Source: Amoeboaphelidium protococcarum X5
Taxonomy: Eukaryota > Fungi > Aphelidiomycota
Reading direction: 5' to 3'
NCBI GenBank assembly: GCA_023515725.1
Contig: JALDTO010000301.1
Coordinates: 1-8,655, forward strand
Length of the DNA: 8,655 nt
Shown: positions 1 through 8,655 of the stretch, in pieces
How the letters are laid out: each line of letters starts with the position of its first letter
Numbering within the stretch: position 1 is the stretch's first letter
Position numbers and translations under genes: made by a program
Notes under the pieces: model-generated
What the model saw: the letters and a program-made list of their open reading frames with translations, nothing else
Database searches by the model: none
What the model was told of the DNA's origin: nothing

Positions 1-70
1 TGTTTTGCCAAACATTCACACTACTCTGCTGCCAAAGAAGTCCAAGAGTGCTGCTTCTTAGGAGATGTGA
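1..70 (+). CDS. H2A: Histone H2A (H2A.X-type C-terminus), 3' end only; gene runs off the left edge
   Basis: Frame from position 2 reads VLPNIHTTLLPKKSKSAAS-[TAG 59-61]-EM-TGA(68-70). This matches the H2A tail VLPNI..LLPKK plus the terminal SQ(E/D)-hydrophobic motif (yeast H2A ends ...KASQEL) if TAG=Gln. Absent from the ORF track. Confidence 0.93.
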
Positions 71-222
71 GTTGTCTCTAAGTATGTTTATATTATACTT
101 TCAAAATGGTGTTTTTAAACACCTTCAATTGACTACCTTATGGTGTCAGTTGATCAAGATGTTGGGAAAATGTTTTATTCTATTCATCACTTCTATTGTC
201 TATTCTAATATCCAAATTCAGA

Positions 223-1164
223 TCACATCTTCTAAGTGGCCTTCATGGTTGAAACAACTTTGGAGATCCAATGCAAGTTGACGTCTATCCTTGTGAATAA
301 GTTGGGAGGACTTCCATTGAACTGTGGCCATTTGTTGCCCATTCCAGCGCATGAATATCTACTTGCAGAAACCAGCCCAATAAGGGACGGCGCTTTGTCG
401 TTAACAAACAGCGGTCCACCTGAATCGCCGAAACATGTACCTGAACTTGGCTCTTAACCAATGGCACATATTAACTCATCATCAGCAAAGCCTTTAACCT
501 GTATCTGCGTATTGTCGCAATTGCCAAATTCAGTGAGGCTCATTTGCAACTTTGAAGCTAAACGCGAAGGTTAGAAAGTGCGAATGTCAGATACGCCCCA
601 TCCAGCCACATAGATCTTTTAGTATAGAGGACCCTACTAAGATACAACACTGGTATTCTTTTACGGATTAAGAGGTGCTTCAATTGGCTTACTAGGCAAC
701 ACTTTAATGCTACTGTTCAAATTAGAGAGATTTCGATTCAACTAGATTGGCTCAACCTTGTGCAAATTACGTACTGAATCTTTCCAAGGTTTCAGCGATA
801 CCACAGCAATATCATACTTTGGATGCACGGTCACATTAATGAAATCAAAGTAGACAAAAGAGCCATCATTCGTACTATTCAGATCGACGAAATTCATACG
901 TACATGGCTGTGCTACAGAATATCATTACGCGATTCTGACGGAAAACAATGAGCTGCACTGACCATTGCGAATATACCATCTTTGGCAGTGATAAGGGAC
1001 CCACCGCATTAATGCATGCTTTGATTAGATTAGATACTGGCCAAAAATGGCAACGGCTTCTCCAAAGGTTCACCATTAATGACGCGTTTATATAGTTATA
1101 CTGAGTGAGCAAACACTGAAAGTGTCTAAAAATCAAGCACTAGTAAGAATATTAGAGCTTTCAT
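223..1164 (-). CDS. Secreted trypsin/chymotrypsin-family (peptidase S1) serine protease, 313 aa, non-Asp189 S1 pocket
   Basis: ATG 1164-1162 to TGA 225-223 with 13 in-frame TAR and no internal TGA. Hydrophobic N-terminus MKALIFLLVLDFQTLSVFA, activation site YKR|VINGEP, then CGGSLI, SAAHC (His 949-951), YDIAVV (Asp 811-813), AGWG, LICA and GTCFGDSGGP (Ser 421-423). Confidence 0.92.
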
Positions 1165-1413
1165 ATCTATCTTCGACCTGATTATTTATCGTAAAAAGAA
1201 TACGGCATTTGATGGCCATAACGCAGATTTCATATCACTAACGTGACGTTACACACATAACGTGAATTGTCCGAATGATCGTGCTGCCAATTTCACAGTC
1301 TATGCTCCCTCATAAATAAATTCAATTTACACATCTGACCTATAAAAGACAGTACTGTAAGATAGTATTATCAAAACTTCATTTTAAATCAATCAATCAT
1401 CTATTCAAAACGT

Positions 1414-2691
1414 TCAAAATTTCAAAAATCGACCAATCAAATCATTCACCTAATTCTTGACTTGGGGATTATCGTTGTAAAATTAATGAGCTTTCTGTGC
1501 GTAATTATCTATCTAAGCACTGTCCAAGTTGTCGATCTGTGAAATGTCAAACTCTGGATTGAATTGCCTGGCAATTGAGTTGGCAGATGAGCGAATCTCC
1601 TAGTTCTGCAGCACAGACTTAACGTGATTACTCTTCAAAATGTTAGATACTCCTCCGAATTGAGATATAAGATTATTCAAGTCGCGTTTTTGCAGTTATG
1701 GTGACTCTAATTTCTTCATCTACTTGAGATTATCGTTGATCCACGACTGAAAGTATGAGATGTTCGTGTAAACTGCAGGAACATTGGCCGGCAAGAGCAA
1801 ATTACCAAACTTGAGTGAAGCACATCTATCACCAAACGCCGTCAAGCCAATAGCAACTGGATACTCCTGATCAACATATATAGGACCTCCAGAGTCTCCT
1901 TGGCATGAATCAGACTTCAAATCTTGACCCTATGCGCAAATTACACTTTCGGGAGGAATCTTTGATCCATCAAAATTCAGGGCATCAGCACAAGATTAAA
2001 ACTTTGACATTTCCAAATTCAGAGTCTGAGCGTGATTAGAAGATGACTACCCAGCTTCAAGAGCTCCCCATCCAGAGAGCTTCAACTTACCATTAAGTGG
2101 ATTATTCACCTCGACACCATTCTTTTTGTCATTCCATTTCTCAAATCTGTTCAACAGTCTGTCAACAACATTGCCGTCTTTATCGCCACTTGATTACTAA
2201 GCACTTGCACCACCCAGCTGAATATCAGACGCGTTAATACTCATAGGTTTCAAGTATTTCAGGTTCTTCTCAAATATCTTTACCGGACTCAGCTATAACT
2301 GCGCAATATCGTAGGCGGTTTATCCGTTTTCATAGACTGTAAAATTCTGGTGAACTTTCACACTATTGATCTTAAACACGACAGATTGATCATTGTCGCC
2401 AACCGCGCGCAGCTCCAAGAAGTTTACTCTCACATAGTATCTGCCGTTCACAGTACGCGGTGGCTTGTCGGCAAAGCAGTGACCAGCAGTCAGCACTGAA
2501 TATATTCCGTCTGGAGCTTGGATTAGACCACCGGTACAGAAGTGCTATCCCTTTTCATTCTGAATACTAGCCAAGAAAGGCAGAGGTTACTCGAGCGGTC
2601 TGCCATTGACGATTCTCTTGAACAACGCCACAGCATCAACACATTACCAAACCGCGATTATAGCCGCTAAACACCAGATTCCTCTAAGCAT
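1414..2691 (-). CDS. Secreted trypsin-like (peptidase S1, Asp189) serine protease with ~100-aa C-terminal extension, 425 aa
   Basis: ATG 2691-2689 to TGA 1416-1414 with 16 in-frame TAR. Signal-like MLRGIWCLAAIIAVWQCVDA, FKR|IVNGRP, CTGGLI, TAGHC (His 2479-2481), YDIAQL (Asp 2308-2310), SGWG, VICA, DSCQGDSGGP and PAVYTNISYFQSWI. ORF-track entry 1720..1920 is a fragment of this gene. Confidence 0.93.
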
Positions 2692-5958: not shown

Positions 5959-6070
5959 GAAAGGAGCTTGAATTTAAAAGAGTAAATGTACTGTATTATG
6001 AAAATTTAATAAGCTTAATGAGTTTAATAATCAGTATTTTCTGCTATAATACGTACTGTATACTCAATAA

Positions 6071-7306
6071 TCAAGCGCGTTCACGATTCTTCTACAACCT
6101 GCTTTTAATAAAGTTTGGCACTAGAGGAATAACATCATTGAACACAAATGTTCCATAGATTAACACTAGGAATCCAACAACCTGAAGCCAGATGAAGATC
6201 TCCCAGCCCAGTGCCAAACTGATGATCCAGATGAACAGAGTCCTGCAAGTATCGATCGTAGTCCTAGACGTGGCGGAGATATAACGCGTCACATTAAGGC
6301 CAAAGTAATTAAAGAAGGCAATGGACAATGCGCAGCCAACACTGGAGCCCCAAACTGCTGGACTAGACGCCAAATCCTCATATCCAGACACCAGATCAAA
6401 GTATCCGCCCGTGTCCTTACCGAATGTGAAGTGGAATATTGGCATGAACAACAGCAAGGTGATCAAACCAAACAAACCTTCAAGACCAACCAATTTGATC
6501 GGAGTGCCAGTATAGTTGATTATGATCTTCTCTTCAATGACAAATTGGAAAGCGGACGAGATCTGCGCAGCCAGAATGAACAATACACCCACAGAAGGAC
6601 TGAGGAATGATGCGTGAGTATCCACAGCCTTGTCATCTTTGAACAATGTGGGAGCGAGGCCAACCAGCGCAACACCAACCATGACTGTGCTCAGCGCAAT
6701 GATTCTGTATAGTGGCAATTTAATACGCAAAATGAAAAAGGACAAGATGCCAGTGAATATAACCACAGCACCACGCAGCATCTAATACACTGATGCGGCG
6801 ACAACGAGTAAACCGACATTCATTAAAGTGGTGCCCACAATATCGCACAGAGTCGGCAACCACAGCAAGAAATTAGCGTATCCCTTCAGTTCTTTACGCG
6901 CAAATTGTTAATCAATACCACTAATACCACCACCTAGATCATCTTCAATGGGTAGAGTGTCAGCAGCGGAGGATGATCCTTTTAAAAGCGGCTCATCTTC
7001 ATCATATTACGAGCTGCCAGCCACGCCAAACTTCTTCACACTTGAAGACTTCTAGCTGCGATGATACACATTCCCGATCCAATACACAAGCATACACAAG
7101 AATTCGCCAATGAACATGGTAAGTGTCTACCACACAGGCTGAGCGTAATGCTTCGGGTTATCGGTGTTACAGTCGCGTACACACTGTTTATCCTGGAATT
7201 TATTCAATAGAGTATTCGCAGTACCTGTGGCTAGCATACCAACAACCAGCAGTAGCGAAACCATCGCTGAGCTCTTATCCTTCTTATGGCTACCTTAGTT
7301 GCTCAT
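6071..7306 (-). CDS. SLC35F6-like drug/metabolite (nucleotide-sugar transporter-like) membrane protein, 411 aa
   Basis: ATG 7306-7304 (in-frame TGA upstream at 7336-7334) to TGA 6073-6071 with 7 in-frame TAR. Motifs MLATGTANTLLNKFQD, QPVWQTLTMFIGE, LPTLCDIVGTTLMNVGL, SVYQMLRGAVVIFTG, QFVIEEK, VGLEGLFG, SIAFFNYFGLNVT, SATSRTTIDTCRTLFIW and multiple transmembrane segments. Confidence 0.9.
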
Positions 7307-8016
7307 ATTAGGTGTCCTATTGTTATGGTTTAATCACTATGACACTGATAAACTGAATATTTATCAGATTTTCACAAAGAGGGTGAGAATGATGGAGTCG
7401 TCGGCAGTAATAATTATAACGTGATTACCGTAACACCCCTGATTGAAGAGAATTTGTAAGCCTCTTGGATAAATCAAGTATATTCTAATGGAAAGGCTAT
7501 GAACCAATATAACCTATGGTTTATGAGTTATTCACGTAATTTTTCTACGTTTGAAGATTGAAAAAGGCACAGCTAAATCTATCTAGACAGACTGATTTAA
7601 ACTAGCGAGCAGACTGGTGATGGCTCTGATTTGATGGCGCACGATAGTGATGTAAAGATCAATTGTTGCTTCATAAAAGTTTTTACTATCTCTGAACAAT
7701 ACCAGTGAATATGCGTTAAGCAGTGGTTAGTTAGTATCGAATATTCAGAGGCTTTAAAAGTTATCCTATAATCCATCGTGTAATACTGCTTATAAAGGAA
7801 GCGTTCAATCAGCGAAGTCGCGTTTAAACAATACTATAGTAAAAGTGTTTAAGGCGCGATGCAATCTAATAACGTACATTTAATAATTACTTGGTAAGCT
7901 AAAACAGGTGGTATGAACAAGATTAAAAAGAGTTTAATCAGTTAGATTTCAGTTAATGTTATTCTCACGATAAATCATGATAAATTAATAGGTCAGAGAG
8001 TATACAATGAACATAC

Positions 8017-8655
8017 TCAGAACTCTTCACCCTCATCCTCTCCTTCAATAGAGTCAGTACCTACCTCCTCATAATCCTTCTCCAAGGCGGCCAAGTCTTC
8101 ACGAGCCTCAGAGAATTCACCCTCTTCCATACCTTCCCCAACGTACCAGTGCACAAACGCACGCTTAGCATACATCAAGTCAAACTTGTGATCCAGACGA
8201 GCCCAAGCCTCTGCAATGGCAGTAGTGTTGGACAACATACACACTGCACGAGGAACCTTGGCAACATCTCCACCAGGTACAACGGTAGGGGGCTGATAGT
8301 TGATACCAACCTTGAAACCGGTTGGACACCAATCGACAAACTGGATGGTGCGCTTCGTCTTGATGGTTGCAATAGCAGCATTGACATCCTTTGGCACGAC
8401 ATCACCGCGATACAGTAGACAACATGCCATGTACTTGCCGTTTCTTGGATCACACTTGACCATCTGATTATTAGGCTCAAAACAAGCCTGAGTAATCTCA
8501 TGGACGCTCAACTGCTCGTGGTAAGCCTTCTCAGCACTAATAATAGGAGCATAAGTAGCAAGAGGGAAATGGATACGAGGATAAGGCACCAAGTTGGTCT
8601 GGAACTCGGTCAAGTCAACATTCAGGGAGCCATCAAAACGCAGAGACGCAGTGAT
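8017..8655 (-). CDS. TUB1: Alpha-tubulin, C-terminal ~212 aa; gene runs off the right edge
   Basis: Reads [30 protein letters not shown]...[18 protein letters not shown]...[35 protein letters not shown]...EGEEF, ending at TGA 8019-8017. The ORF-track 'start' at 8613 is an internal Leu. Confidence 0.99.

Follow-up and report, generated by a model that had tools for sequence, protein, structure and literature searches.

Genetic codes related to that of Amoeboaphelidium protococcarum

Translation table 6, in which UAA and UAG (UAR) are read as glutamine (Gln) and UGA as stop, is used by ciliates (Tetrahymena, Paramecium, Stylonychia), hexamitines, oxymonads and ulvophytes. For the aphelid Amoeboaphelidium protococcarum the same reading goes back to Karpov et al. 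2013, as quoted in PMC5304391, PMC6299283 and PMC11687900. It is the only nuclear code with UAR as Gln among close relatives of fungi named in the reviews consulted; its relative Paraphelidium tribonemae, also an aphelid, has the standard code (PMC6299283). Here we analysed 8,655 nucleotides of the A. protococcarum genome (contig JALDTO010000301.1 of assembly GCA_023515725.1, the whole stretch being termed the window), in which eight genes (Table 1) contain numerous in-frame TAA and TAG codons (together TAR; CAA and CAG are termed CAR).

The nuclear code of A. protococcarum is almost certainly table 6, with UAA and UAG meaning Gln and UGA as terminator. We draw this from alignment columns of homologous proteins, from codon exchange between duplicated genome copies, from cognate transfer RNA (tRNA) genes and from RNA-like contigs which keep the TAR codons. 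An original prediction, made from the window's sequence alone, had proposed the same reading and an aphelid as its source, and both proved right. For this species the code was already on record in 2013, so that no new reassignment is involved; judged by the papers quoting it, the published code does not differ from the one described here. The NCBI annotation of the assembly already reads TAR as Gln, too: the annotated protein P0152 has Q at 8/8 aligned TAR codons of a transporter paralogue (locus L056). With the table 6 organisms A. protococcarum shares not only the codon meanings, but also tRNAs with the anticodons UUA and CUA and changes of the release factor eRF1 at positions 124, 126 and in the TASNIKS motif. 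It differs from them in that its code arose independently, in an opisthokont.

TAR codons at conserved glutamine positions

Window genes were delimited by a six-frame scan and by translating with TGA as sole stop. The eight genes contain 78 in-frame TAR codons (40 TAA and 38 TAG) and no internal TGA, and all eight end in TGA. At the TGA frequency of the window, a TGA-free run of 304-426 codons is expected by chance with a probability of 5e-4 to 3e-5 each. The absence of internal TGA and the TGA ends had been predicted correctly; the predicted total of about 77 TAR codons is the one obtained when a minus-strand frame (5958-5257) that we reject as a gene is counted.

Four TAG codons had been put forward as lying at conserved Gln positions (59-61, 3476-3478, 6784-6782 and 7129-7127), and all four are present at these coordinates. 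In the transporter, the column of TAG 6784 (SVY-x-MLRG) is Gln in 95/95 ungapped homologues and that of TAG 7129 (QPVW-x-T) in 77/77. In the second genomic copy of this transporter, TAG occurs at two more columns where the window has CAG; these columns are Gln in 70/71 and 96/96 homologues. A transporter paralogue on contig C155 (L056) carries TAA at codons 260 and 266, where 96/96 and 92/96 homologues have Gln. The same paralogue (L056:449-1729) has Ser at codon 185, in the SVY-x-MLRG motif, instead of the Gln present in 95/96 homologues. Judged from the sequence, this may reflect a changed function after duplication.

The Gln of the C-terminal SQE motif of histone H2A is conserved. TAG 59-61 falls on this residue in the SQEM end of the window's H2A piece, all 23 codons of which are the same in the second copy; the full-length H2A on contig C206 has the same ending. 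The Apn1 site, by contrast, did not hold as a conserved Gln. In the column of PHG-x-Y, Ser is found in 73/102 homologues and Gln in 2/102, and TAG 3476-3478 is therefore weak evidence, since the column is mostly Ser. None of the TAR codons of Apn1 lies at a conserved Gln column in the alignment of 102 homologues.

The eRF1 genes themselves require the reassigned code. The two copies need 12-14 TAR codons to be read as Gln, among them TAG codons at columns with Gln in 22/25 and in 49 of at least 59 homologues and, in one copy, the Gln of the catalytic GGQ motif (Gln in 61/64), which is written GGT-GGT-TAG in this copy and GGT-GGT-CAG in the other. The piece preceding GGQ aligns with human eRF1 as far as G184. 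At the transporter sites and in the GGQ motif of eRF1, TAR falls on near-invariant Gln.

Exchange of TAR and CAR between genome copies

The assembly (23.6 Mb, 40% G+C) is duplicated, in agreement with the published genome-wide duplication of A. protococcarum (PMC10608142). A second copy of the whole window, 90% identical to it, lies on contig C206, and 60 of the 74 window TAR codons compared are TAR there as well. Differences between the two are concentrated at third codon positions. First-position C/T swaps between copies affect Gln/TAR codons (8/105) about as they affect synonymous Leu codons (12/136), in contrast to nonsynonymous pairs (8/480); TAR and CAR interchange between the duplicated copies at the synonymous rate. 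TAA/CAA and TAA/CAG swaps both occur. When eRF1 is read with table 6, 51 codons differ between its two copies, but only one amino acid does.

The code extends far beyond the window. A stretch of 200 kb from contig C264 contains a single open reading frame (ORF) of 300 or more codons (0.5% coverage) when read with the standard code, but 87 (65% coverage, compared to 8% in shuffled sequence) when TGA is the only stop. In ORFs of 400 or more codons of this contig, Gln is encoded by TAA (565), TAG (858), CAA (551) and CAG (737), so that TAR accounts for 52% of Gln codons, with a share per gene of 0.11-0.77. No TAR was found in full alpha-tubulin pieces or in H2B (L051:89-466). This is likely an expression-linked codon bias, and the avoidance of TAR in some highly expressed genes suggests that the new codons are less favoured in translation.

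Suppressor tRNA genes

Genes for tRNAs with the anticodons UUA and CUA, which the original prediction had named as a check, are present, each in both duplicated copies (Table 1). The two tRNAs share 69 positions with each other and 51-54 of 74-75 with tRNA-Gln(CUG) or tRNA-Gln(UUG); the best non-Gln tRNA among those retrieved shares no more than 47. Furthermore, the CUA tRNA gene on contig C200 has a tRNA-Gln(CUG) gene about 0.6 kb away. Because of their mutual similarity, their closeness to tRNA-Gln and the neighbouring CUG gene, we infer a single origin of both from tRNA-Gln by local duplication. In such a course, duplication and anticodon change would have produced the UUA and CUA tRNAs, which the normal glutaminyl-tRNA synthetase would charge and which would decode UAA and UAG directly.

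Changes in eRF1

The eRF1 retains GTS, NIKS and YxCxxxF. Rare substitutions in the N domain, for which a search had been proposed, were indeed found: I35V, L37M, T58A, S60V, R68K, Q79S and L126Q (human numbering), plus the rare L124M. They lie partly in the TASNIKS and YxCxxxF region of this codon-reading domain. The first seven are absent from environmental eRF1 fragments, 24-119 of which cover each site. Positions 124 and 126 of human eRF1 are two of the four whose change gives the UGA-only mutant of Stylonychia type (PMC3384315), and position 126 follows the genetic codes of ciliates, where Phe is typical of species reading UAR as Gln, unlike the Gln of A. protococcarum (PMC4482090). An eRF1 altered in this way (T58A, S60V, R68K, L124M, L126Q and others) would have lost most UAR recognition and would terminate at UGA.

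In the searchable literature we found no description of the suppressor tRNAs or eRF1 changes of A. protococcarum; the genome paper, which may treat them, was outside this search.

Some observations do not fit the proposed code and its mechanism smoothly. In both copies, the UUA and CUA tRNA genes have a U1-C72 mismatch in the first pair of the acceptor stem, which may bear on their charging; tRNA-Gln(UUG) has G1-C72 instead. Editing of the 5' end or a relaxed demand on the first pair may account for it. In yeast, Gln at the equivalent of L126 seems to be compatible with activity at all three stops (PMC4482090), and L126Q alone is for this reason probably not the cause. Finally, the sequencing runs that supplied the RNA-like contigs (X5 and X9) come from another strain, and their RNA nature is deduced from spliced joints and uneven depth.

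Alternative explanations

UAR might have a dual meaning, Gln within genes, while UAA close to the poly(A) tail also terminates a minority of proteins, on the model of the context-dependent stops of Blastocrithidia and Condylostoma. The motifs retained in eRF1 count in its favour, as does a C-V-V-M-TAA pattern at two sites that look like a duplicated pair, C136:319132 and C244:237737. Termination was sampled in 113 ORFs of 250 or more codons (about 250 kb). The recognisable genes among them, however, end at TGA and have no tail resembling an untranslated region after a TAA; those running to TGA include Prp8, CAD, BiP with HDEL, enolase, Dom34, eRF1 and tubulin. TAA is no commoner than CAA in the last five codons, and H2A requires TAG as Gln three codons ahead of its stop. 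Pattern scans were too noisy to separate TAA: CaaM was followed by TAA 13, TAG 14, TGG 6 and TGA 20 times, HDEL by TGA 7, TAA 2, TAG 2 and TGG 4 times. We regard a dual meaning of UAA as unlikely. TGA had been called the sole stop in the original prediction; this is true of every recognisable gene checked, while UAA might still end a small minority of genes. If it does, an opisthokont would have a context-dependent stop.

Much less probable is it that TAR is edited to CAR in the messenger RNA or spliced out. Introns do occur in the A. protococcarum genome, but at six Apn1 sites the RNA-like contigs keep TAR, with no T-to-C change and no splice joint over a TAR codon among the first 40 differences compared. 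The existence of cognate UUA and CUA tRNA genes argues against editing, too.

Pseudogenes or assembly errors rich in nonsense codons have nothing in their favour except the stops seen under the standard code, and are hardly credible given the lack of internal TGA, the TAR codons kept in the 90%-identical copy, the predominance of third-position changes, the presence of TAR in the essential eRF1 and Prp8, and the same codons in independent runs. A ciliate contaminant or a new reassignment in another opisthokont lineage, the latter raised in the original prediction in case the source was no aphelid, can practically be dismissed: ciliates and other protists do have this code, but the H2B of C206 is identical to A. 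protococcarum KAI3634536.1 (MIR68_007447), the best transporter matches are the A. protococcarum proteins MIR68_004429 and MIR68_004091, and the nearest named non-aphelid transporter homologues are fungal. Accession numbers of strain X5 (PMC10057920) enclose those of the matched proteins, which makes X5 the probable strain.

Genes of the window

Pfam families were assigned on stop-free pieces of the window genes.

Table 1. Genes of the window, with the UUA and CUA tRNA genes and eRF1. Positions without a prefix refer to the window; prefixes denote other contigs or loci.
Feature	Location	Strand	Remarks
Histone H2A, 3' end	2..70	+	1 TAR; TGA at 68-70
Trypsin-like (S1) protease 1, secreted	223..1164	-	313 codons, 13 TAR, TGA end; PF00089 on C-terminal piece
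Trypsin-like (S1) protease 2, secreted	1414..2691	-	425 codons, 16 TAR, TGA end; PF00089
Apn1/endonuclease IV family apurinic/apyrimidinic (AP) endonuclease	3023..4141	+	372 codons, 8 TAR, TGA end; PF01261 (AP endonuclease 2)
Orphan Gln-rich ORF	4244..5155	-	303 codons, 25 TAR, TGA end; kept in second copy
Small membrane-protein gene, two introns	exons 5302-5371, 5438-5537, 5605-5971	+	178 codons, 8 TAR, TGA end
SLC35F6-like nucleotide-sugar transporter	6071..7306	-	411 codons, 7 TAR; Pfam SLC35/EamA
Alpha-tubulin, 3' part	8017..8655	-	212 codons, 0 TAR, 6/6 Gln = CAG, TGA end; PF03953
tRNA, anticodon UUA	C158:383536-383608; C200:16432-16504		both duplicated copies
tRNA, anticodon CUA	C158:362956-363027; C200:31431-31502		both duplicated copies
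eRF1	L003:1441-2757; L004:1441-2757		two copies

The gene at 5302-5971, encoding a membrane protein of 178 residues, lies hidden beneath an open frame of the minus strand. It has two GT-AG introns (5372-5437 and 5538-5604), the joints of which are present in contigs of both runs X5 and X9. Compared to the second genome copy, the spliced plus-strand model differs by 30 synonymous and 9 nonsynonymous changes, and two of its eight TAR codons are CAA there. We do not accept the intronless minus-strand frame 5958-5257 as a gene, because it is interrupted by TGA in the second copy and shows an excess of nonsynonymous (38) over synonymous (23) changes. A search with exon 3 only gave no firm family for the spliced gene.

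Protease 2 is intact in the window. In its second copy (L049), two bases are deleted near window position 1625, resulting in an early end and the loss of the C-terminal module. Beside the second copy of the window (L049/L050, C206:146-161 kb) are a pair of H2A and H2B genes and another gene for a trypsin-like protease, the third, so that histone pairs and secreted proteases are clustered locally.

Distribution of the code and its meaning

A Logan contig from SRR9661224 (L061:1-927, 51% G+C) holds a transporter gene without introns that is 65% identical to the one in the window, with TAA at an invariant Gln, one further in-frame TAG and a TGA end. Three other environmental transporter genes (L059, L060 and L113) have introns, lack TAR in frame and stop at TAG or TAA. 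In a quick tree, in which an X marks the exon junction of two environmental genes with two exons each, these four and the A. protococcarum genes form one clade with 99% support. A scan of metagenomes with the transporter gave distant matches only. The source of L061 is probably another aphelid sharing the code, a lead from one gene and two codons, and its sister sequences L059, L060 and L113 seem to use standard stops. As an extension of what is known, a code common to A. protococcarum and the L061 organism is more likely than a dual meaning of UAA, but it is also the smaller one.

The value of these results as a discovery is small, the code having been published for the species and built into GenBank. 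Over the piece compared, the eRF1 of A. protococcarum shares 70-75% identity with eRF1s of the standard code, and it is so similar to them that its few listed substitutions are directly testable in yeast readthrough assays. If the L061 organism shares the code and its sisters do not, this would help to place the code change within the aphelids. For A. protococcarum itself, table 6 is needed for the interpretation of every other finding from this genome.

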